Shown one piece after another: positions 10,201-38,920 of a stretch of DNA of 64,000 nucleotides. This stretch comes from Macrostomum hystrix. Taxonomy: Eukaryota; Animalia; Platyhelminthes. Position 1 is the stretch's first letter, and each line of letters opens with the position of its first letter. The position numbers and the translations under genes were made by a program. Where the stretch lies: contig CATNEN010000005.1 in the NCBI GenBank assembly GCA_950097015.1, positions 372,001-436,000 of the forward strand, read 5' to 3'. The notes beneath the pieces are model-generated. The model had not been told where the DNA came from, ran no database searches, and saw only the letters and a program-made list of their open reading frames with translations.

Positions 10201-13200
10201 GGAATTAAAGCCTCACCGAATCCAACTCAGCGGAGCGACTCTGACTCTGGCCCAGCCTGTCCAGCTTCTCCTTCAGGTGATAGCAGTGTAGGCGCAGGTC
10301 GAAATTCTCTTGGTTTAATTTGACCATTTTCTGCGATTTGAATTTGGATATTTTTCGGCTAAGTCTCGAATGGGGATTCTAGGAATTGGCATTTCTAGGA
10401 CTCGGGGATAGGGTATTATTTCAGGACTTCATGGATAGTGATTTCTAATAGATTTAGGGAAAGGAATTTAGGATGGGATTTCGAGATTCATTAATGAGGC
10501 TGATCAATGGATTTCTATGATTTATGGATGTCTTCAGGGAAATTATTATTTAGGAATAGAGGATTCATGAAAATCAGGGTTAGGGATTTTTATAGGATTC
10601 CATGAGTAACATTATATCCCAAAACTTGATAGTAATAATAATAATTGCAGGAGGGCTGCGGGCAATGACACATAGTTTGGTGACACTAGACCCGCAGCCA
10701 GCGAGGAGGCAATTCTGCCCATTTCGCTGACTCCTGAGCACACACGCACACAGATACCGTACGCAGGCATACGCTCACACAGGTGTGTACATCTGCCCTG
10801 ACTTTCTCATCGTCGGGCAGTGTACACTCGAACTGTGCCTTGGAGGTTGGCCCTCAAGGGCGTAAATTGCACGACAAGCCCCCAAGCCTTCTCTCCGCGG
10901 CTGCGCCCCAAATAAATGTGGCCTCGCCGTGGAATCGAACTTAGGGACCGTGGTGCGAGAGGCAAACGCGTTAACCGCTCTGCCACCGACCCCCCAAAAC
11001 TTGATAGATAATTTTAAGGATTCTCCTATGGGATTATTTTAATCCAATGGAAAGCAATTTCCTTAACTCGCTGTTAGGGATTAGTGAGATGAAGATGAAA
11101 TTTCTAGGAATTAGTACAAATATTTCTGGGATTAATAAATTTCTGAACTGGCGATAACTACGGAATGTAAATTAAAATAGCTACCCAAAGTTAGTTCATC
11201 ACGATTTTTAAAGAGCCTGATTATGGATAAGAATCTAATTAGATAATGATTACAAATCAATCAAACCTCAACAGTGTGCTGCAAATCAATTCCATTATGG
11301 AGCAGCTGCTCAGCATTGTGCTCAAACTGTTGTCCATTGCGCAGACAATTCGGGCAGAGCATTATCAATTGTGTGGGTGCGTAATCCTGGTCTGGGGAAT
11401 AATAGTCGCTATCGTAATCGCCATGAAAACTATCCATGGCTTATCTTAGTTTGTGTTGTGATCACTTTTTATTCCGCAGTATTCGGGCCAACACTCACTG
11501 ACTGGGTAAGGCAATATTCCTTGAAATTCTAAAATTTATACACAGTTAGAGCTATACAGAAAATGTACAGATAAAATAGATTTAGGCACAGATATAAAAA
11601 TTGTGTACAACTGAGCGTAGAGACACTTAATAACAGTCACAGGATGCTTGACGTAGGAGGGGGTGAGGAATGCTCGCTAGCATCTAGGGGAATGATTTTA
11701 GATGCACATCTTCACTCACATCTTTGCAATTGACGCTGCCGGCGAGTGGACTGTTGGCGTTGGCTGTACGGCCGGTACAGTTAGTCATCTGGGGGGCCAA
11801 GCTCGCACTGCCGGGCTGTACACTGCGGACCGATTTGAAGGAAGAAAACGGGATTGAAGGATAGAAAGGGAATTAGAATATACGCGTGTAGAGGGGGATG
11901 AGAAGTTCGGCACATTGGGACGAGTTTTAGATGTAAAAAGGGAAGAAAAATCGACGCCGAATGGTCCCAATCGTCCACTCATTCTGGTCTAGAAAACTAT
12001 CCCTCGGGCCCAATTCACTTCTATCTCAACTGTACAACTGTGCTTGATGGGTGCAGTGCTGCACTTTGATATATTCGTCCAACTAAAAAAGCTATCTATT
12101 CGTAGTTTTATCTGCTAAATTTTAAGACGACTACTAAAAGTAGACATGTAAGAAATTGACGCATAAATTGACAACAAAACGGTGTTTTATTAACTTAACT
12201 AGGAAAGTGGAATATTAAGGTTCGAGGAGAAAATAACTGATGACCTTTTGTTAGCTTTTATTTCAATGTTAGCTTAATTTTAAAATTAAGTATGCAGCAT
12301 GAAATATACGAGGGCTGTCCCAAAAGTAGTGTTACTTTTGATTATATCTTTTCTTCTGATGGTTCAAATAACGTGATTTTACAGTCTTATATCGGCAAGT
12401 CTCTTCTTTATATTAATTCAAATCTTTTTTCTAACAGACTAAGGAAAGAGAAGTTATCAACGAAAAACTAACAGGACCTCAACCGTAGACTTACAGTAAA
12501 TCAACAAGCTATCGGAATGCTACGAAAGTGCTTTCGACTGAGGACACTATTTCAACCAAAATTTCTGAATTTCTCAATCTGTGAGAAAGATATGTCTCTA
12601 GAAAAATCATAATGAAGTTATAATTTGAAAGTTGTCTCTGGAAAAGATGGAATGAAATCTTCATATCTCTCACTGGGACTTGGCTTCAGTACGAGCATTT
12701 TTGTTCCCATTTCTTGCTGTGCCAAAGATCATGGATGTGCATTCAAGTTTTGCCCAGAGGAGTGTGATTTACACCCTTTAGAAGACAGGGCACAGTGCAG
12801 CCGAGATTCACGCGCAACATTCATCAGCTCATGGGTCTAGCGCTGTCAGTAAAATGACCATCTATCGTTGGATAGAACAGTTTCGAGCGGGAAGGACGGA
12901 CCTTGCTGATCAGCTCAGGACAGGTCGCCCTCATGTTCGAGACTGACATCCTGGCTGACGCTATCCTGGAACTTCTTGATGAGGACGCACGAATGACGAT
13001 CAGAGAGATTGCTGACAGGCTGAATACTCCGCGATCAACGGTTCATCGAAGTCTCACCAGCATGGATTATGTGAAGCTGAGTGCTCGCTGGATTCCACGC
13101 CTTCTGACACCAGACCTGAAAGAGCAGCGGCAGCGAGTGTGCCAGGAGAATCTGGAGCTCGTCAGGCAACATGGTGGATGGGAAACATTTCGGCAAATCG

Positions 13201-15275
13201 TTGTTACTGGTGACGAGACGTGGGTGCCTCACTTCGATCCCCCCACCAAACAGGAGTCCAAGGTTTGGACAATCAGGGGTTCAGATTTAATATAAATATA
13301 AAGATTAATAAAGATTTGAATTTAAATCTTTAATATAAAGATTTGAATTAATATAAAGAAGAGACTTGCTGCTATAAGACCGTTAAAATCACTTTATTTG
13401 AAACATCAGAACAAAAGATATAATCAAAAGTAACACTACTTTTGGGACAGCCCTCGTAATAATATTTAATATACTATAATTTCTTAATATAATATAAACA
13501 TACAAGTAAGCTACTCAATAAAAGCTATTTAAAAAAATTGACAAATAAGGCTATTGATTGCACCAATCTTCCTGAGCTTTATTCTGTTACAAGGCCACAT
13601 TCATTTGGGGGGGCATCTGTAGAGAGAAGGCTTGGTGGTTTGTCATACAATTTATGCCCCTGAGGGTCAACCTACAAGGCACAGTGAAGTGTATATGGCC
13701 TGACAATGAGAAAGTCAGGGCAGATATATGCCTATGTGAGCATATGCTTACACATAGTATCTACACATGAATATGCTTAGGAGTCAACAAAATGGGCAGA
13801 ATTGCCTCCTAGATTGTTGTAGGCCTATCTAGTGTCACTAACTAGTGTGCCATTTCTAGCAGCCCTCCCTAGAATGATTATTATAATTTAGCGAGCCACC
13901 AAAAATGTTCCTCTCCTTCCTTCCTAGTCTTAGGTTTAACCTACAGACAATAGCAATAGACAAACATATATGGTTTTGGCAAAATAGATAAACCTACACA
14001 TTGCCTTGCCATGCCATTGCAAAGTTACTACTTACAATGAGTAATAAAATAGTTTATTTGTACAAATTAATTAATTGTACAAAACTATAAAATTGCTAAA
14101 TACTCAAGTACACATAGCTATAAGGTTAACTTTGATCTTAGACATAGGTAAAATATATTGGCATGAAAAAAAATGTTTTCATTGATATTATGTTTTCTGT
14201 ATAGACCCCTGTCTACATTGCATTTTCTCTAATAGTTTTGTAATAATAAAAAGGTAGTTGTTATTTGTCCGGTTAACCGGTTAACCACCCAAGGACTTTT
14301 CTCCCCTTTCAATGAGCAGGAGCAATGATCCTCCCAAAGACCACTCTTGCCCTGCTAATAGCCATCTTGAGTCTTTGACCTCACAAAGACCAAACTATAC
14401 CCTTGAACTAAGTTAGTCCCTGAAACAACCGAATTTCTGGAAAAGGTTTTAATTTTTTTAATTAGTTGATAAACGAAAATAATTTGAGACACAAACTTCA
14501 AATCTGAATGACTGTCCTTTTGCAGCTTGTTAATTATTTTATCTTACAAATGATAGAGGTTCTCGTGGTAGCGCTATACAACCCTTACAACCTCAGTTAA
14601 CCGGACGAATAATCAAACCTAATAAAAATGGCTGTTTAAGTGTTAGGCATACATGCACAACACCCGGCCAAACCGGCCGAACCGGCCAGGTGAAACGAGG
14701 GGCCAAGCAAGGTAAGTCGCAAAAACTAATCGACCAAGCACAAAAAATCAAAGGGGGGACCAAGGGACAAAAAAGGAAGGCGTGAAGAAAAGGATAAAGG
14801 GGAGAGAAAAAGAGAGCAAATGAGAGCAAACTAAGTTGTAAATAGAGCAATGAAATGAACTAAGTTGCAAATGAGAGCAAAAACTAAGTCGCAAGGCCAG
14901 CTAAGATTTGGGAGGTTGCGCATGTATGGTGTTAGGTATTACTTAACTAGCATTAGGCCTAATTAAAAGAAAACACTAACAGTCAAGACAAAAATAGTTT
15001 TTGCTTTATAAAATGAAGCATACAAAAGAATCAAACCACAATATTAGCATGTTAGTACATTACCTTTATCTTGTGAATTGATCTTGCAAGCTAGGGCCTA
15101 CTTTAATTGATTAACCAAGAAAATTTTTATTTGTTTGTAAATAAAATATTCTTGAAACAATCATACAAACCTACTTACCAGATACAAAAATACCAATTTC
15201 ATATATATGTACATATATAAGTGTAAACAAAAATTCTTACTTCTCCTTTGATACTCCACTAGAAGTGAACATCAT
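380..15275 (-). CDS. cnn: Centrosomin/CDK5RAP2/myomegalin-family gamma-TuRC-recruiting coiled-coil protein; multi-exon, 3' end beyond the left edge of the window
   Basis: Phase-consistent GT-AG exons (transcript order): 15241-15275, 11720-11822, [alternative first exon 11267-11437], 10217-10330, 8699-8830, 8372-8566, 5324-5759, 3531-4872, 2630-2725, 1647-2329, 1452-1565, 380-738. Exon 10217-10330 encodes [23 protein letters not shown], matching the CM1 motif (LKKENFNLKLRIYFLEE type). Exon 380-738 ([17 protein letters not shown]...[11 protein letters not shown]) resembles the myomegalin HVIGHIDDYSALREQ...LLTMFWRAALP block. The 5'-most exons are less certain. Confidence 0.8.
795..1242. repeat. 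(AGAC)n microsatellite with AGGCTG variants
   Basis: Direct inspection; produces the spurious ORFs 768-1280 and 781-1317. Confidence 0.95.
2369..2585 (+). mobile_element. tRNA-derived SINE family A, partly deleted copy
   Basis: Degenerate B box CTCGATTCC; shared body GAGGGCCAACCTCCAAGGCACAGT and tail CTCAGGAGTCAGCGGAATGGGCAGAATTGCC. Confidence 0.8.
2780..3500. repeat. Degenerate ~20-bp minisatellite (CTAATCCGTTAGTTTTATCC)
   Basis: Recognisable, decayed units. Confidence 0.75.
3531..4872 (-). CDS. cnn: Large cnn-like exon with tandem 8-aa (K/R)ERAE(V/E/Q)(L/I)A repeats
   Basis: ORF 3527-4738 extended to the acceptor ttttctag|4872; donor GC|gtaagg at 3531; 24-bp coding repeat most regular at about 3930-4210. 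Confidence 0.85.
4982..5160. repeat. 35-bp minisatellite, about 5 copies
   Basis: ACGATAGACTAAATGATCCTATATGGGGATTATTA. Confidence 0.9.
5800..6500. repeat. Two related 22-bp minisatellites (GATGGAGTGACATTCATTAGGT grading into GATGAAGTGACAGTAATATGGT)
   Basis: Direct inspection. Confidence 0.95.
6993..7841 (-). CDS. Secreted C-type lectin-like domain protein with C-terminal PAN/apple-like Cys domain; intronless, nested in a cnn intron
   Basis: Hydrophobic signal peptide; CTLD pattern (AQDLC...L...VWIGL...YRW...CVAM...C...LLC); C-terminal [17 protein letters not shown]...C; AATAAA on the minus strand at 6779-6784. Confidence 0.8.
   Translation of the reverse strand: MLSLRNSTFATSCVAVILALTIGYSAACAPGRSDYDLYGDLCALYLSSPFPPSSPLTFNGAQDLCRSYEGDLVGSDAQLEAVWSATAPMGATVWIGLTGGLSNSDNSYRWLSSGAAKFGLDISRYWQRDGTLPSGAAAAKSGSGCVAMYTVSGLRVLLSMPNCTSHGSAGIDGLLCRYDPSVAKRIGRLGSRYARSIDAPGSKESKAVLIKQSVTSATMSRVECVFRCSTNPLCRIVHFYAGAIGGFNSKGDCYHGYYDLTPKPLLSDAFKVGQWNSFVFNN
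8880..9515. repeat. 34-bp purine-rich minisatellite
   Basis: GTGGGAGAATGTGGCAAAGGGGAAGAGGGAGGAA. Confidence 0.95.
10217..10330 (-). CDS. cnn: CM1 (centrosomin motif 1) exon of the cnn-like gene; not in the ORF track
   Basis: cgcag|AAA ATG GTC AAA TTA AAC CAA GAG AAT TTC GAC CTG CGC CTA...TCG|gtgagg; 114 nt, phase 0-0; ENFxL core conserved. Confidence 0.85.
10632..10996 (-). mobile_element. tRNA-derived SINE family A, most complete copy
   Basis: On the minus strand: A box TGGCAGAGCGG, B box GTTCGATTCC, shared body, internal hairpin CTGCCCGAC-gatgagaaa-GTCAGGGCAG, (ATT)n tail. Confidence 0.88.
12309..13456 (+). mobile_element. Internally deleted Tc1/mariner DNA transposon
   Basis: About 120-bp imperfect TIRs CGAGGGCTGTCCCAAAAGTAGTGTTACTTTTG... 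at 12309 and inverted at 13337-13456; TA on both sides (12307-8, 13457-8). Confidence 0.92.
12731..13270 (+). pseudogene. Mariner transposase remnant
   Basis: [18 protein letters not shown]...[13 protein letters not shown]...GRP (in-frame TAG at 12779), then a frameshift, HTH TIREIA...[12 protein letters not shown] (WVPHEL-like) and IVTGDETW (first catalytic D); the remainder of the DDD domain is deleted. Confidence 0.9.
13590..13885 (+). mobile_element. SINE family A copy, 5'-truncated and fully CpG-decayed
   Basis: Collinear with the 10632-10996 copy from AGGCCACATT to the ATT tail; contains no CG dinucleotide. Confidence 0.8.
14255..14621. mobile_element. Probable hAT-like MITE
   Basis: Imperfect TIRs TAGTTGTTATTTGTCCGGTTAAC / inverted GTTAACCGGACGAATAATCAAACCTA; GGTTAACCGGTTAACC palindrome; near-match flanks ATAAAAAG / ATAAAAAT. 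Confidence 0.45.
14648..14928. mobile_element. hAT-type MITE (281 bp)
   Basis: 14-bp TIR CATACATGCACAAC / GTTGCGCATGTATG; exact 8-bp TSD GTGTTAGG at 14640-14647 and 14929-14936. Confidence 0.85.
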
Positions 15276-18120: not shown

Positions 18121-19042
18121 GTAAATTCGAAATGAAGCCTGTAATTTATAGAAAATGTGTGAAGTTGACGCAGAATAAATCTGACTGAGCGACATCTAAA
18201 CTTTTGTTACGACAGTGGGAGAAAAAAGCACAAAAAACTAGGCAAAACGATTTCAAAACACTAATATCAGTAGCTAGTGAGTGATGACAGCTTAGCTCTG
18301 GGGAACCGTCTATCCTGCTAATTAAATATTTTTTGTGGAACAATTTGAGCCAGCTCATAATCGCGTTGTTGTTTTTTGTTTAAATGCTTAAAAAGATGTG
18401 TAATCTAGCTGCGAAAATAAGCTAGTTGAAAAACAATTCTAGAAACAAAGGAGTTAAAATAGCATACTCGGGACTATCAAGAACAATTCAACATACTTTG
18501 AATTACGATAAACTTCAATGGTAATTAGAGCATTTTAGCACCAATCTAGCGCCTAAAACTATAACGGGTAAATTTTTCAGTAATAACCTAATTTCATACT
18601 ATATTAACTGAGAAATTTAACTACTACTAGTGACAATAGTCAAACAGTAGTAACAAATGGATATTTAATAAAACGTGACGCTATGCAAAAATTGGTTAAT
18701 AAAATTATTGGAGACGAGATAAATATCGTTAGAAAAGCGAATAAATATGGTTGTCTGCTGTTTGCATCATTTCATAGATACTAATTAAAGCCATTGAGAT
18801 TAATTCTCAGACCGCTAAAATCTAAATACTTAAAAATGCTTCATTTTCAGTTACATAGAAATTTCACTGGTGTGTTTTCTATGTGTTTGTAAAATAAAAT
18901 CTCTAACATAACATTTGTAAATTCATCGAAGTCATTTAAATTATGTTTATAAAAGTTTAAATCTAAAATACGCTCGTTTAGAAAGACTGAAATTCTACAC
19001 TACTAAGCTAGCTATAAGTAGTAGCTGCAATTGAAAATAAAG

Positions 19043-19985
19043 AAGGGATGAGAGAGTAGATAGAAGGGATGAGAGAGTAGATAGAAGGAATGAGAGAGTA
19101 GATAGAAGGGATGAGAGAGTAGATAGAAGGGATGAGAGAGTAGATAGAAGGGATGAGAGAGTAGATTGAAGGGATGAGAGAGTAGATAGAAGGGATGAGA
19201 GAGTAGATAGAAGGGATGAGAGAGTAGATTGAAGGGATGAGAGAGTAGATAGAAGGAATGAGAGAGTAGATAGAAGGGATGAGAGAGTAGATAGAAGGGA
19301 TGAGAGAGTAGATAGAAGGGATGAGAGAGTAGATAGAAGGGATGAGAGAGTAGATTGAAGGGATGAGAGAGTAGATAGAAGGGATGAGAGAGTAGATAGA
19401 AGGGATGAGAGAGTAGATTGAAGGGATGAGAGAGTAGATAGAAGGAATGAGAGAGTAGATTGAAGGGATGAGAGAGTAGATAGAAGGAATGAGAGAGTAG
19501 ATTGAAGGGATGAGAGTAGATTGAAGGGATGAGAGAGTAGATTGAAGGGATGAGTGAGTAGATTGAAGGGATGAGTGAGTAGATAGAAGGGATAAAAGAG
19601 ATTGAAGGGATGAGAGAGTAGATTGAAGGGATGAGAGAGTAGATTGAAGGGATGAGAGAGTAGATAGAAGGAATGAGAGAGTAGATTGAAAGGATGAGAG
19701 TAGATTGAAGGGATGAGAGAGTAGATAGAAGGGATGAGTGAGTAGATTGAAGGGATGAGTGAGTAGATAGAAGGGATAAAAGAGTAGATTGAAGGGATGA
19801 GAGAGTAGATTGAAGGAATGAGAGAGTAGATTGAAGGGATAAGTGAGTAGATTGAAGGGATGAGAGAGTAGATAGAAGGGATGAGAGAGTAGATTGAAGG
19901 GATGAGAGGGTAGATTGAAGGGATGAGTGAGTAGATAGAAGGGATGAGAGAGTAGATTGAAGGGATGAGAGAGTAGATAGAAGTG
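19043..19985. repeat. 21-bp purine-rich minisatellite (GAAGGGATGAGAGAGTAGATA)
   Basis: Direct inspection; lies 3' of the ENPP stop codon. Confidence 0.95.
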
Positions 19986-20075: not shown

Positions 20076-23000
20076 TTAAGCAAACAAAGCATAGAAGCTA
20101 GCAAACCCGGCCAAAGTCAAGCAAAGCACGGCGGCCGGTTGATCAGCAGCTGGAGCAGCACTGGCGGCATCCATCGTTAAATAGGCCGCTTCAGGAATAT
20201 TCTTAGGACTCTGTTTATCCTCCTGCAGCAGCAGCAGCAGCAGCCGGTCATTGATTAGCTTCGGCATTGACTGGCGAATTTTCCAATCTCGATAATCTAA
20301 TCCTAGCAGATGAAGCAACAGCGGATAGAGGTCTAGAATTTCGATAGCGTCAAAGTTGAGACTGGCATTGTTAAACAGATCATAGCCGCTGTGAACTAGC
20401 GGTCCGGCAATAATTGCGGCCGTGTGCATATCCTTAGCAGCTGGATCGTAGCCGTGCCAACCCTTGGCCGGGCCGCTGCTGTATCCCGGATAGAGACGGT
20501 CGAATGTTTCAACAAAGACGCCAGGCTCGGCTAGTAGCGAAAACGGTGGCAACCGACTTGTCACTGTCGGCTGCTTGGCCGCTTTAACTAATCTGGGATA
20601 GAAACGGCTGATTATTTGGGCGTCAGTTAGCACTTCCACGTGCGGATGCTTGCTCTGCATCAGCTGCGGATGGAAATGAACGAATGAATGCTGGACAACC
20701 TGATGCTCAGGCTCTATTACCTGACACCCTGATGCTCAGGCTCTATTACCTGAAACTCTGGAGCTCAGGCTCTATTACCTGACACTCTGGAGCTCAGGCT
20801 CTATTACCTGACACTCTGGAGCTCAGGCTCTATTACCTGACACTCTGGAGCTCAGGCTCTATTACCTGACACTCTGGAGCTCAGGCTCTATTACCAGACA
20901 CTCTGGAGCTCAGGCTCTATTACCTGACACTCTGGAGCTCAGGCTCTATTACCTGACACTCTGGAGCTCAGGCTCTATTACCTGACACTCTGGAGCTCAG
21001 GCTCTATTACCTGACACTCTGGAGCTCAGGCTCTATTACCTGACGCTGACACTCTGGAGCTCAGGCTCTATTACCTGACACTCTGGAGCTCAGGCTCTAT
21101 TAACTGACACTCTGGAGCTCAGGCTCTATTACCTGACACTCTGGAGCTCAGGCTCTATTACCTGACACTCTGGAGCTCAGGCTCTATTACCTGACACTCT
21201 GGAGCTCAGGCTCTATTACCTGACACTCTGGAGCTCAGGCTCTATTACCTGACACTCTGGAGCTCAGGCTCTATTACCTGACACTCTGGAGCTCAGGCTC
21301 TATTACCTGACACTCTGGAGCTCGAGCTCTATTACCTGACACTCTGGAGCTCAGGCTCTATTACCTGACACTCTGGAGCTCAGGCTCTATTACCTGACAC
21401 TCTGGAGCTCAGGCTCTATTACCTGACACTCTGGAGCTCAGGCTCTATTACCTGACAATCTGGAGCTCAGGCTCTATTACCTGACACTCTGGAGCTCAGG
21501 CTCTATTACCTGACACTCTGGAGCTCAGGCTCTATTACCTGACACTCTGGAGCTCAGGCTCTATTACCTGACACTCTGGAGCTCAGGCTCTATTACCTGA
21601 CACTCTGGAGCTCAGGCTCTATTACCTGACACCCTGAAGCTCAGGTTCTATCACCTGACACCCTGAAGCTCAGTTTTTGTTACCTGACACCCCGAAGCCC
21701 AGCTATACCTGACTATCTGAGACCCAGATAGGATAAGCAGGATCCCAGCCGCTCACCTGCATCATATTCCACAGGCTCTGGTTTTTTCCTGGAGCCGGCC
21801 AGACGCCGACAGCTGCGCCGACGTGCACCACCTTCAGCACATCGTTGTGCATTGCGAACAGTTCCAAGGTTGTTCGATCAACGCGGTCGATATTAGACAT
21901 GCCGTGATCGCCCATCACGGCCAAATGCGCCCCCGCGTGGGCACCCCAATCGCTGTTAACAATGCGACTCAGAGCTAGATTAATGAGAACGTCAACTTGA
22001 CGCAAAAGTAGACGCCGATTAGTAACGGAATCGGGCCCATAGCGATGTCCGCTCCAATCTAGCAGGTCAACATAAAGCACTACGAGATCAGCGTAGCCGC
22101 TTCGCATTGACTCGGCGCCTGAAATGATCAGCTTTTTGGTTGTTTTATCTGGGGATCTGGGTAAGGCTACAGTTTAATCTGAGGATCTGGGTAAGGCTAC
22201 AGTTTAATCTGAGGATCTGGTAAGGCTACAGTTTAATCTGGGGATCTGGGTAAGGCTACAGTTTAATCTGAGGATCTGGGTAAGGCTACAGTTTAATCTG
22301 AGGATCTGGTAAGGCTACAGTTTAATCTGGGGATCTGGGTAAGGCTACCGTTTAATCTGGGGATCTGGGGAAGGCTACAGTTTAATCTGGGGATCTGGGT
22401 AAGGCTACAGTTTAATCTGGGGATCTGGGTAAGGCTACAGTTTAATCTGGGGATCTGGGTAAGGCTACAGTTTTATCTGGGGATCTGGGTAAGGCTACAG
22501 TTTAATCTGGGGATCTGGGTAAGGCTACAGTTTTATCTGGGGATCTGGGTAAGGCTACAGTTTAATCTGAGGATCTGGGTAAGGCTACAGTTTAATCTGG
22601 GGATCTGGGTAAGGCTACAGTTTAATCTGAGGATCTGGGTAAGTCTGGGTAAGGCTACCGTTTAATCTGAGGATCTGTGGAAGGCTACAGTTTAATCTGA
22701 GGATCTGGGTAAGTCTGGGTAAGGCTACAGTTTAATCTGAGGATCTGGGTAACTCTGGGTAAGGCTACCGTTTAATCTGAGGATCTGTGGAAGGCTACAG
22801 TTTAATCTGGGGATCTGGGTAAGGCTACAGTTTAATCTGGGGATCTGGGTAAGGCTACAGTTTAATCTGGGGATCTGGGTAAGGCTACAGTTTAATCTGA
22901 GGATCTGGGTAAGGCTACAGTTTAATCTGGGGATCTGGGTAAGGCTACAGCTTTATCTGGGGATCAGGGGAAGGCTACAGTTTAATCTGGGGATCTGGGT

Positions 23001-26000
23001 AAGGCTACAGCTTTATCTGGGGATCAGGGGAAGGCTACAGTTTAATCTGGGGATCTGGGTAAGGCTACAGCTTTATCTGGGGATCAGGGGAAGGCTACAG
23101 TTTAATCTGGGGATCTGGGTAAGGCTACAGTTTAATCTGGGGATCTGGTTAAGGCTACAGTTTAATCTGAGGATTTGGTTAATGCTACCGTTTAATCTGG
23201 GGATCTGGAGAAGGCTACAGTTTAATCTGAGGATCTGGGTAAGGCTACAGTTTAATCTGGGGATCAGGGGAAGGCTACAGTTTAATCTGGGGATCTGGGT
23301 AAGGCTACAGTTTAATCTGGGGATCTGGTTAAGGCTACAGTTTTATCTGGGGATCTGGGTAAGGCTACAGTTTAATCTGGGGATCTGGGTAAGGCTACAG
23401 TTTAATCTGGGGATCTGGGTAAGGCTACAGTTTTATCTGGGGATCTGGGTAAGGCTACAGTTTAATCTGGGGATCTGGGTAAGGCTACAGTTTTATCTGG
23501 GGATCTGGGTAAGGCTACAGTTTAATCTGAGGATCTGGGTAAGGCTACAGTTTAATCTGGGGATCTGGGTAAGGCTACAGTTTAATCTGAGGATCTGGGT
23601 AAGTCTGGGTAAGGCTACCGTTTAATCTGAGGATCTGTGGAAGGCTACAGCTTTATCTGGGGATCAGGGGAAGGCTACAGTTTAATCTGGGGATCTGGGT
23701 AAGGCTACAGCTTTATCTGGGGATCAGGGGAAGGCTACAGTTTAATCTGGGGATCTGGGTAAGGCTACAGTTTAATCTGGGGATCTGGTTAAGGCTACAG
23801 TTTAATCTGAGGATTTGGTTAATGCTACCGTTTAATCTGGGGATCTGGAGAAGGCTACAGTTTAATCTGAGGATCTGGGTAAGGCTACAGTTTAATCTGG
23901 GGATCAGGGGAAGGCTACAGTTTAATCTGGGGATCTGGGTAAGGCTACAGTTTAATCTGGGGATCTGGTTAAGGCTACAGTTTTATCTGGGGATCTGGGT
24001 AAGGCTACAGTTTAATCTGGGGATCTGGGTAAGGCTACAGTTTAATCTGGGGATCTGGGTAAGGCTACAGTTTTATCTGGGGATCTGGGTAAGGCTACAG
24101 TTTAATCTGGGGATCTGGGTAAGGCTACAGTTTTATCTGGGGATCTGGGTAAGGCTACAGTTTAATCTGAGGATCTGGGTAAGGCTACAGTTTAATCTGG
24201 GGATCTGGGTAAGGCTACAGTTTAATCTGAGGATCTGGGTAAGTCTGGGTAAGGCTACCGTTTAATCTGAGGATCTGTGGAAGGCTACAGTTTAATCTGA
24301 GGATCTGGGTAAGTCTGGGTAAGGCTACAGTTTAATCTGAGGATCTGGGTAACTCTGGGTAAGGCTACCGTTTAATCTGAGGATCTGTGGAAGGCTACAG
24401 TTTAATCTGGGGATCTGGGTAAGGCTACAGTTTAATCTGGGGATCTGGGTAAGGCTACAGTTTAATCTGAGGATCTGGGTAAGGCTACAGTTTAATCTGG
24501 GGATCTGGGTAAGGCTACAGCTTTATCTGGGGATCAGGGGAAGGCTACAGTTTAATCTGGGGATCTGGGTAAGGCTACAGCTTTATCTGGGGATCAGGGG
24601 AAGGCTACAGTTTAATCTGGGGATCTGGGTAAGGCTACAGCTTTATCTGGGGATCAGGGGAAGGCTACAGTTTAATCTGGGGATCTGGGTAAGGCTACAG
24701 TTTAATCTGGGGATCTGGTTAAGGCTACAGTTTAATCTGAGGATTTGGTTAATGCTACCGTTTAATCTGGGGATCTGGAGAAGGCTACAGTTTAATCTGA
24801 GGATCTGGGTAAGGCTACAGTTTAATCTGGGGATCAGGGGAAGGCTACAGTTTAATCTGGGGATCTGGGTAAGGCTACAGTTTAATCTGGGGATCTGGTT
24901 AAGGCTACAGTTTTATCTGGGGATCTGGGTAAGGCTACAGTTTAATCTGAGGATCTGGGTAAGGCTACAGTTTAATCTGGGGATCTGGTTAAGGCTACAG
25001 TTTAATCTGAGGATTTGGTTAATGCTACAGTTTAATCTGGGGATCTGGAGAAGGCTACAGTTTAATCTGAGGATCTGGGTAAGGCTACAGTTTAATCTGG
25101 GGATCAGGGGAAGGCTACAGTTTAATCTGGGGATCTGGGTAAGGCTACAGTTTAATCTGGGGATCTGGTTAAGGCTACAGTTTTATCTGGGGATCTGGGT
25201 AAGGCTACAGTTTAATCTGATGATCTGGGTAAGGCTACAGTTTAATCTGGGGATCTGGTTAAGGCTACAGTTTAATCTGAGGATTTGGTTAATGCTACAG
25301 TTTAATCTGGGGATCTGGAGAAGGCTACAGTTTAATCTGAGGATCTGGGTAAGGCTACAGTTTAATCTGGGGATCAGGGGAAGGCTACAGTTTAATCTGG
25401 GGATCTGGGTAAGGCTACAGTTTAATCTGGGGATCTGGTTAAGGCTACAGTTTTATCTGGGGATCTGGGTAAGGCTACAGTTTAATCTGAGGATCTGGGT
25501 AAGGCTACAGTTTAATCTGGGGATCTGGTTAAGGCTACAGTTTAATCTGAGGATTTGGTTAATGCTACAGTTTAATCTGGGGATCTGGAGAAGGCTACAG
25601 TTTAATCTGAGGATTTGGTTAATCCTACCGTTTAATCTGGGGATCTGTGGAAGGCTACAGTTTAATCTGGGGATCTAGGTAAGGCTACAGTTTAATCTGG
25701 GGATCTGGGTAAGACTACAGTTTAATCTGGGGATCTGGGTAAGGCTACAGTTTAATCTGGGGATCTGGGTAAGACTACAGTTTTATCTGGGGATCTGTTG
25801 AAGGCTACAGTTTAATCTGGGGATCTGGGTAAGGCTACAGTTTAATCTGGGGATCTGGGTAAGGCTACAGTTTAATCTGGGGATCTGGGTAAGACTACAG
25901 TTTTATCTGGGGATCTGTGGAAGGCTACAGTTTAATCTGGGGATCTGGGTAAGGCTACAGTTTAATCTGGGGATCTGGGTAAGGCTACAGTTTAATCTGG

Positions 26001-27005
26001 GGATCTGGGTAAGGCAACAGTTAAGTCGGACAATTTGATTAATCTAAAAAACTCACCTTCTAATAGTGCAGATTTTACCTCCTCCAAAGGTGCTAGGCTT
26101 CGATAAGGCCTAGCGCAAACCGTTGAAGTCTTGTCCATTCCAGCATTGTGGGAGCCGGTTCCCCCGCAACCTGGCAGATAGTACAACAGACTGCGTCTGC
26201 CAACTTTTGCTAAACTGTCCCACAATGGTTCGATGCCCAATTCAGTGTGAAGATGAGACATGAGACCCGGCGAACTCTTATTAAATGTTACATTTAATAA
26301 CGGATCGTAGTTCTCGTTTCCAATTAGACCGTGATGAAGAGGGTAGACGCCTAAATATATTTGTTTAGATAAAAACGTTAACTTTGTTATTTAATCCATA
26401 GATAAGAACTCTCATTAGGCCATAGATAAGCACACTTATTAGGCCATAGATAAGTACTCTCATTAGGCCATAGATAAGCACACTTATTAGGCAATACATA
26501 AGCACACTTATTTGGCCATAGATAAGCACACTTATTTGGCCATAGATAAGTACTCTCATTAGGCCATAGATAAGCACACTTATTAGGCCATACATAAGCA
26601 CACTTATTTGGCCATAGATAAGCACACTTGTTTGGCCATAGATAAGCACACTTATTTGGCCATAGATAAGCACACTTATTTGGCCATAGATAAGCACACT
26701 TATTAACACATAAACAACAACTCACCAGTGAATATAGAGTAGATATTGGGCAGGCACAAGCTGGGATAAACTGGTCTCAATGGGATAATAGAGGCTCCTT
26801 GTTTTCGCAGTCGACTAAATCCTGTCAGGCCGTCATCCAACGGATAATCCCAGCGAAGTCCATCTAGCAGCATGACAAATAGTGGTGCCGGAGTAGCAGC
26901 CGGTAGCTTCTTCGCAGCTGTTGCATGGAAACTGCCTAGCAACCAACAACAGGCTAGTAGAAGGAAATATTCAATGTTAGAAAAAGCCAGCTGTTTGCGA
27001 AGCAT
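20076..27005 (-). CDS. ENPP6: ENPP6-like ectonucleotide pyrophosphatase/phosphodiesterase (alkaline-phosphatase superfamily) with signal peptide and GPI-type C-terminus
   Basis: Exons 26726-27005, 26057-26350, 21757-22118, 20076-20663 (phases 1,1,0). Motifs LLDGLRWDY, YPSLCLPNIYSIFTG, HGLIGNENYDP, YYLPGC, ADLVVLYVDLLDWSGHRYGP, MGDHGM and GWHGYDP; YYxPGC and ADLxxxY are ENPP6-like. Hydrophobic C-terminal tail. Confidence 0.85.
20700..21690. repeat. 29-bp minisatellite filling ENPP intron 3
   Basis: ACCTGACACTCTGGAGCTCAGGCTCTATT. Confidence 0.95.
22145..26010. repeat. 30-bp minisatellite with higher-order blocks, filling ENPP intron 2
   Basis: GGGATCTGGGTAAGGCTACAGTTTAATCTG; identical variant blocks 640 bp apart (23182 and 23822). 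Confidence 0.97.
26395..26705. repeat. 24-bp minisatellite in ENPP intron 1
   Basis: CCATAGATAAGCACACTTATTTGG. Confidence 0.93.
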
Positions 27006-27474
27006 TTAAGATCAAATCGATCCCTTTTAAACCGTTAGGGATCAATGTTAGGACGCGAATATCTGAAAAGATCGAAAATTGAAAGAGAAAAAACTTTTGC
27101 TAAGCAAAGCTAATATACAGACACTCAGCAGACACATAAAACTTGCTACAAGCAAACTTGCTATCATATAAATAAAATCGATTCCATATAAATTTCTTTT
27201 CAACACCAGTCGATAACACTGAAAATAAGACAATATCTCATATCACAGCGATATAGCGAAACTGTAACTTTTTCTTAGCAAAATATTATTGCTTATAATC
27301 CTACTATACACTTGCTAGGCAAAATAAATGGCTTGACAAACGCTGGCGCCTATAGAACCAAGGAACGATAAAAACCCTTGATGCAATTCTAACCACGAGT
27401 ATTGAAGCATTTCTCGAGATAAGGCTAATTTTAATTTTAGCAGTCAGACGTTGTAATGATAGCTTGGGTTTTGC

Positions 27475-32424: not shown

Positions 32425-38256
<5,832 letters not shown>

Positions 38257-38920
38257 CTAACCTAAAGGCTGGAATAGATTTTAAGTCAATTTAAGTTAAT
38301 CGAATTTTACCAAATATATATTAATACAACAATTATTAAAGTAAAGACAACAATTATTATATTTAATTTTTTTTAAATCATTGGCCTCCTCATTGTTCTC
38401 ATGCCCAGTCTACACATTGAGTTGGTTGGCTGCCCTTGTGTTTGGCTAACCTCATTTGTTTTACCCTTATTGGTTAAAGTGTAAATCCATTTCATTTGTA
38501 CTCTAGCTGCATCCCACTGTCTACTATTTAAGCCTGCATACTATATTTACACCATTTCTGGCTTTGTTTAAAAAAAATTATTAAAAAATACCTGTATTTT
38601 AGCAAGGTACTTTTTTGCTTAAATTATGCTAACAGAAAGATGGAATAAGAAATGGCTTTACAATATTTTATAGATAGACAATCAGCCAGTTTATCTAAGT
38701 ATATTGTTCCTTGTTGCAATAGTCAAATTTATAATCAGTTAAGATTTTAAAGATATGTTGGCCCTATCTTAACAAAAAATCTGTAACAAAAATACTAGTA
38801 GCAGCACTTGTTATAGGGGCCTAACATATTATTGAACGTTATTTTATGAGCTTAGCAACTTTGTCCAACTCGGAATATTATGACACTTCTTCCTACAGTT
38901 AATGTATTATACATTACCTG

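Follow-up and report, generated by a model that had tools for sequence, protein, structure and literature searches.

What does it mean that a flatworm gene of the ENPP6 type encodes cysteine at the position of the catalytic nucleophile? The alkaline-phosphatase superfamily is a classic example of the co-evolution of nucleophile, metal and pocket, and the nucleophiles known in it are, to our knowledge, Ser, Thr and formylglycine, with Cys recorded from a laboratory mutant only. In the window analysed here (the whole stretch of 64 000 nucleotides of Macrostomum hystrix DNA), the initial annotation had reported such a cysteine in an ENPP6-like enzyme, with an intact metal site and no sign of general decay. 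Within the ENPP family the nucleophile is Thr in all members but ENPP6, where it is Ser (PMC8808174).

The ENPP6-like gene was modelled from open reading frames, Pfam matches and splice sites on the minus strand (27005..20076), giving four exons and a product of 507 residues (Table 1). Exon 1 ends in ...PVYPSL-C-LPNIYSIFTG (minus strand of 26790-26726), followed at once by a GTGAGT donor, and the two split codons of the gene each read GGC. The M. lignano gene model P0064 (BOX15_Mlig033181g2) likewise has four exons, with junctions and phases as in the window gene. The joints between exons 2 and 3 and between exons 3 and 4 were based on GT-AG borders, reading frame, the P0064 junctions and the 1623-nt contig X2 described below, the transcript alignment covering 26700-27300 only.

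Table 1. Features of the ENPP6-like locus and its surroundings in the window (window coordinates).
Feature	Position	Strand	Remarks
SL trans-splice AG acceptor	27063..27064	-	mRNA body from 27062; polypyrimidine tract and CAG; contigs X2, X6 and X10 stop matching here
5' UTR, 57 nt	27006..27062	-	sequence reading
Exon 1, coding part	26726..27005	-	ATG at 27005; D48 and Cys84; ends in phase 1; Pfam Phosphodiest E 1.2e-08
Cys84 codon TGC	26754..26756	-	column of ENPP6 Ser71 and of the NPP Thr nucleophile (PDB alignments)
Intron 1, GT..AG	26351..26725	-	nearly all 24-nt minisatellite (26396-26705, 13 copies)
Exon 2	26057..26350	-	Asn105 at 26316-26318; Cys155 and Cys172 in an insertion loop of the ENPP6 type; N-x-S/T twice; Pfam and PDB alignment
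Intron 2, GT..AG	22119..26056	-	filled with 30-nt minisatellite (22142-26022, ~127 copies)
Exon 3	21757..22118	-	Y207, D209 (= ENPP6 E190), ligands D212, H216, D262, H263; top PDB match 5ege, E 5e-14
Intron 3, GT..AG	20664..21756	-	filled with 29-nt minisatellite (20705-21690, ~34 copies)
Exon 4 and stop	20076..20663	-	H382 (GWHGY); low-complexity linker; 17-residue hydrophobic C-terminus without tail (GPI-signal-like)
3' flank minisatellite	19041-19983		21-nt unit
Coronin-like gene (DUF1899/WD40)	~32640-38260	-	upstream of the ENPP6-like gene, same strand
Open stretch	12876-13292	+	downstream of the ENPP6-like gene; resembles a transposase DNA-binding (helix-turn-helix) region

All introns and the 3' flank of the gene were almost wholly minisatellite, each array with a different unit (24, 30, 29 and 21 nt) and that of intron 2 spanning 3.9 kb. 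In the M. lignano homologue, arrays with units unrelated to those of the window were located in introns 1 and 3 and in the 3' flank (L001 10434-10729, 12181-12521 and 13421-14122), with none reported in intron 2. Such turnover of introns in minisatellite form seems characteristic of either the genus or this locus.

By sequence inspection, made without a predictor, the N-terminus of the product resembles a signal peptide. Four N-x-S/T sites are present, and the hydrophobic C-terminus resembles the GPI signal of ENPP6. The product is probably a GPI-anchored ecto-enzyme of the secretory pathway.

Cys84 was placed by phmmer searches against PDB chains in the same column as Ser71 of mouse ENPP6 (5ege, PSLSYPNYY) and the Thr nucleophile of Xac NPP (2gsn, PSLTFPNHY); these alignments and the minus-strand reading of TGC confirmed the reported cysteine. 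The other catalytic residues were present and aligned with their ENPP counterparts, namely D48 (LLDG), N105 (GNENYDP), D212 and H216 (DWSGH), D262 and H263 (GDHG) and H382 (GWHG), in agreement with the metal site of six ligands plus Asn described at the outset. Exons 1-3 each scored above the gathering cut-off for Pfam Phosphodiest (PF01663), and P0064 matched the full profile at 146.7 bits. The spliced model was searched exon by exon, and the structure considered was that of the homologue P0064 and not of the window product. The AlphaFold model of P0064 had a pLDDT of 81 overall and 94 around residue 84; its best match was ENPP6 5EGH (TM 0.88 by target), with NPP structures at TM 0.8-0.88. 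The proposed ENPP6-like identity was upheld by the best PDB sequence match of exons 1 and 3, by this structural match and by the tree described below. The resemblance to ENPP1-5, ENPP7 and Xac NPP extends to the fold, the metal ligands, the Asn and the distances between motifs (nucleophile, TG, HG..N), but these enzymes have a Thr nucleophile (PMC8808174) and are without the insertion-loop disulfide of ENPP6 (PMC4757880).

Contigs of four other public runs were aligned to 26700-27300, a stretch comprising exon 1 and the 5' flank and keeping clear of the intron minisatellites. The X2, X6 and X9 contigs departed from the genome at 26725 and continued with the first letters of exon 2, and are therefore spliced transcripts. 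X2, from a different study than the best DNA source of the window, showed 0 differences across 339 nt including the Cys84 codon, as did X6; the latter was identical at a depth of 2.0 and, as possible carry-over, was not counted as independent. X9, which carries another organism label, had 1 difference (position unlisted) in 68 nt including the codon region. The spliced contigs thus showed TGC where the initial annotation had asked whether reads might show TCC.

On the far side of 27063, the X2, X6 and X10 contigs carried 23-24 extra letters, identical on the mRNA strand to the 3' end of the M. lignano spliced leader (SL), which has been published as 35 nt (PMC8629364). The X2 contig, at 1623 nt, has the summed length of the SL, the 5' UTR and the four-exon coding sequence plus 18 nt. 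The ENPP6-like gene is transcribed, and its mRNA is trans-spliced to the SL. The terminal ATG of the SL is out of frame with the open reading frame and opens a 5-codon upstream frame that stops at TAA 42 nt before the true start. In the organism D run, five nucleotides (ATCAA) are inserted shortly before the start codon, within the 5' UTR (place 27010).

Homologues were recovered by HMMER with exon 3 against 1.84 billion representative proteins, by two word searches and by cluster look-ups. The 120-residue exon 3 query gave 39 significant matches. The word search with exon 1 returned one fragment only, owing to the length window; that with an alignment query, in which fluke words prevailed, returned no cestodes or Macrostomum, and that with P0002, a UniRef M. 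lignano model, returned M. lignano isoforms and bacterial NPPs only. ENPP6-like proteins were recovered from M. lignano, Schistosoma japonicum (including a cDNA-derived entry), S. mekongi, Clonorchis sinensis, Opisthorchis felineus, Paragonimus westermani, P. skrjabini miyazakii, P. kellicotti, a cluster containing Dicrocoelium dendriticum, one transcript assembly and the tapeworm Anoplocephala perfoliata. The sample thus covers Macrostomum, trematodes and one cestode, with planarians, polyclads, monogeneans and other cestodes unsampled.

Three UniRef M. lignano models (P0001, P0002 and P0065) were mis-spliced, part of exon 2 with the HG..GN segment of the catalytic Asn being missing, and P0064 alone fitted the exon structure. 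Annotated fusions of the ENPP6-like protein with eIF2B-alpha (662-851 aa) occurred in Fasciola gigantica (P0010), Dicrocoelium dendriticum (P0068) and Schistosoma japonicum (P0074), which suggests that the neighbouring gene is conserved and that these gene models are read-throughs. In the bivalves Mizuhopecten yessoensis (P0003) and Dreissena polymorpha (P0005), proteins of ~2,200 residues carry NPP catalytic domains as a tandem triplet, each with Thr as its nucleophile; in the Dreissena protein, the second of the three is divergent in the region of the catalytic Asn.

The nucleophile column held Cys in 10/10 full-length flatworm sequences, and in every recovered flatworm sequence spanning the site, against Ser in 6/6 ENPP6-like sequences from outside the phylum (vertebrate, the brachiopod Lingula, thrips, millipede and two transcript assemblies); the other NPP domains recovered had Thr. 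The private allele that the initial annotation had considered was thereby set aside, Cys being found across Macrostomorpha, Trematoda and Cestoda. That the cysteine is an assembly error or a private allele is regarded as next to impossible, and this explanation was ruled out by the transcript TGC from another study, by TGC in M. lignano and by Cys in the independent genomes or cDNAs of at least 10 other flatworm species.

A maximum-likelihood tree placed the Cys sequences in one clade (support 99/98), with Macrostomum branching first, then the cestode, then the trematodes, as in flatworm phylogeny. This clade joined the Ser-type ENPP6-likes at 88/94, moderate support from a small sample, apart from the Thr-type NPPs. 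The simplest history, as read from the alignment and tree, would be a single change from Ser to Cys on the flatworm stem, retained since in Macrostomum, flukes and a tapeworm; given the unsampled groups, a Ser-type copy may co-exist in flatworms.

The closest database proteins are M. lignano entries, and the M. lignano proteome contains no more than a homologue, P0064, which shares ~65% identity with the window gene (56-76% by exon). Nei-Gojobori counts summed over exons gave dN 0.27 and dS ~1.9, the latter saturated, and dN/dS ~0.14. Selection on this pair is purifying, whether P0064 is orthologous to the window gene or a long-separated paralogue. Both genes encode the Cys by TGC, and the two loci are syntenic: the same coronin-like gene lies upstream in M. 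lignano (L001 1-5870), so that the window and M. lignano loci are homologous segments. A decaying copy or pseudogene was ruled out by the intact frame, the GT-AG borders of all introns, transcription and the dN/dS of ~0.14, and the view that the gene is not in general decay held.

Around the nucleophile, the alignment was compared with the ENPP6 structure, in which Ser71 is the nucleophile, Tyr75 and Glu190 are choline-pocket residues and Trp139 is an insertion-loop residue that packs on the pocket tyrosines, the C-beta of Ser71 itself packing on Tyr75 (PMC4757880). The six metal ligands were invariant in the flatworm clade at 24-28% overall identity. At the column of Tyr75, the non-flatworm sequences have Tyr (Trp in the thrips) and the flatworm sequences Ile, Leu or Val (Ile in the window gene); at Trp139, Trp is replaced by Leu or Phe (Leu in the window gene); at Glu190, Glu is replaced by Asp, D209 in the window gene, or by Gly in the tapeworm. 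Tyr72, which is Tyr or Phe outside the phylum, is variable within it (Leu, His, Phe or Tyr; Leu in the window gene). Tyr188 is retained throughout, and Tyr157 in 7/10 flatworm sequences and the window gene, both being Tyr in the non-flatworm set. In 14 columns, a residue common to at least 5/6 of the Ser-type sequences occurred in no flatworm sequence, and the columns of Ser71, Tyr75, Trp139 and Glu190 were four of them. As judged from these columns, the replacements of Tyr75, Trp139 and Glu190 together with the nucleophile are coordinated and not random.

By descent, the protein is placed in the ENPP6 subfamily, while departing from it in two defining features. The nucleophile is Cys84, neither the hydroxyl residue (Thr or Ser) of the NPP family nor the Ser of ENPP6, and the full choline pocket (Tyr72, Tyr75, Tyr157, Tyr188 and Glu190) is reduced to Tyr157, Tyr188 and an Asp at 190. 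With ENPP6 itself, a choline-specific glycerophosphodiester phosphodiesterase (5EGE/5EGH), the flatworm proteins share the one-domain PDE architecture, the six ligands without change, the catalytic Asn, the insertion-loop Cys pair, the two tyrosines, an acidic residue at 190, the hydrophobic C-terminal anchor signal and the same group in the tree. They differ by Cys for Ser and by the changes at 72, 75, 139 and 190, and their substrate is therefore uncertain. Without Tyr72, Tyr75 and Trp139, a large part of the cation-pi cage is missing and the choline cage is reduced by half, so that the ENPP6 substrate may not apply, and the automatic database name 'glycerophosphocholine cholinephosphodiesterase' given to these flatworm proteins may be wrong. 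Literature linking ENPP6, or the enzyme name, with Platyhelminthes, helminths or Schistosoma was sought, and none that was relevant was found.

The loss of these aromatic residues would also fit a pseudoenzyme or binding protein, in which the Cys thiolate is locked on zinc without catalysis and the cell-surface site only binds a phospho-ligand or a metal. The ENPP6 variants S71T and S71A are almost inactive (PMC4757880), so little change is tolerated at the nucleophile site, and the Cys of the E. coli alkaline phosphatase mutant S102C ligates zinc, unlike the native Ser (PMC8938923). The phosphate-binding Asn (N92 in ENPP6, N105 in the window gene), which is Asn in the non-flatworm sequences, was found as Thr or Pro in Schistosoma, in Clonorchis/Opisthorchis and in two transcript-derived fluke sequences, suggesting that in some lineages the catalytic machinery has been relaxed or modified. 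It is nevertheless retained in Macrostomum, Paragonimus and Anoplocephala (one residue out of register), and seven active-site residues are invariant phylum-wide at 24-28% identity, a pattern still compatible with a conserved binding role; the coordinated pocket changes and the low dN/dS also speak against a catalytically dead protein, which is considered unlikely, though it is the alternative to which most weight was given. Seven residues frozen across the phylum, with neighbours changed in step with the nucleophile, favour a working catalytic centre over a relic. Of the three options offered in the initial annotation, these computational data speak rather for a thiol that works as nucleophile in an altered pocket than for a pseudoenzyme.

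Cysteine at this superfamily position is typical of sulfatases, and the protein takes the secretory route, where the formylglycine-generating enzyme acts. The Cys might accordingly be converted to formylglycine in the ER, with the aldehyde hydrate as nucleophile. This is the chemistry of type I sulfatases and phosphonate monoester hydrolases, which belong to the same superfamily and encode Cys at the homologous position, followed by x-P, but which need CxPxR and use one metal. The established formylglycine target motif is CXPXR (PMC10185571), whereas the window gene reads C-L-P-N-I and the clade C-[LHYF]-[PS]-N-[ILV], with Arg in no sequence and Pro absent in the tapeworm, so that the missing Arg pointed out in the initial annotation is a clade-wide trait. 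The ligands correspond to those of the two-zinc NPPs and not to those of the sulfatases, which bind one metal. Pfam Sulfatase matches of 16.8 and 28.9 bits, the one further point in favour, were weak against 147-152 bits for Phosphodiest, and the sulfatase-type reading was rejected on these scores and on the lack of CxPxR. Conversion to formylglycine is judged very improbable.

The conserved insertion-loop Cys pair, Cys142-Cys154 in ENPP6, corresponds to Cys155 and Cys172 of the window gene, and a disulfide is predicted between them. No conserved disulfide partner for Cys84 was found in the ectodomain of the clade: the conserved ectodomain cysteines are three only, the nucleophile Cys and this pair, and the nucleophile Cys is therefore unpaired. 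An unpaired extracellular cysteine could serve as a redox or metal-exchange switch on a water-mediated hydrolase, regulated by reversible oxidation or metal change, and the alkaline phosphatase mutants S102A and S102L retain some activity without a nucleophile (PMC8938923). There is no specific pointer to regulation, however, and the Cys occupies the very position of the nucleophile, in a pocket that has adapted along with it; a switch of this kind is held to be improbable.

The preferred reading, on balance somewhat the better bet, is an active bimetallo ecto-phosphodiesterase derived from ENPP6, in which a zinc-bound thiolate would be the nucleophile and the substrate pocket has been rebuilt. 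The analysis establishes the gene model and its expression, the Cys codon and its conservation, the intact ligands and the descent from ENPP6; catalysis, the binding of metal, attack by the thiolate and the substrate are inferred. In an ENPP6 ancestor, Ser would have changed to Cys on the flatworm stem, with Tyr75, Trp139 and Glu190 replaced and the six zinc ligands kept. The reaction would follow the usual two-metal double displacement of NPPs, with the zinc-bound Cys thiolate in place of the alkoxide; an S-phospho-enzyme intermediate would form and would then be hydrolysed by a metal-activated water. The substrate would be a small phosphodiester, with a head group that is perhaps no longer strictly choline.

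The E. coli alkaline phosphatase mutant S102C offers a comparison for such a centre, being of the same superfamily, with a two-zinc site and Cys in place of the hydroxyl nucleophile; zinc in the flatworm site is predicted. This mutant is reported to carry out transphosphorylation with retention of configuration, its Cys being bound to zinc, and the zinc-ligated Cys may not follow the wild-type mechanism (PMC8938923). It is, however, an engineered variant of a monoesterase, and its pocket has not adapted to the change, whereas the flatworm proteins are natural, ancient and of a diesterase family.

The flatworm-wide cysteine points to an undescribed thiol version of the ENPP active site. A stronger proposal, to which slightly less than an even chance is given, is that the flatworm phylum possesses a natural 'thiol-NPP', which would be the first two-zinc enzyme of the alkaline-phosphatase superfamily with an unmodified Cys thiolate nucleophile and an S-phosphocysteine intermediate, having arisen once from ENPP6 with a rebuilt pocket and been kept as a surface enzyme in free-living worms as well as in flukes that parasitise humans. 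A phylum-wide Cys whose neighbours have co-adapted would amount to a natural experiment comparing thiolate and alkoxide in phosphoryl transfer at a two-zinc centre. In Schistosoma, Clonorchis, Opisthorchis and Paragonimus, the protein is a probable surface ectoenzyme whose active site is unlike that of host ENPP6 at a key residue, and it is therefore a candidate for parasite-selective chemical probes. The flatworm enzyme also bears on how the worms obtain choline or related head groups.
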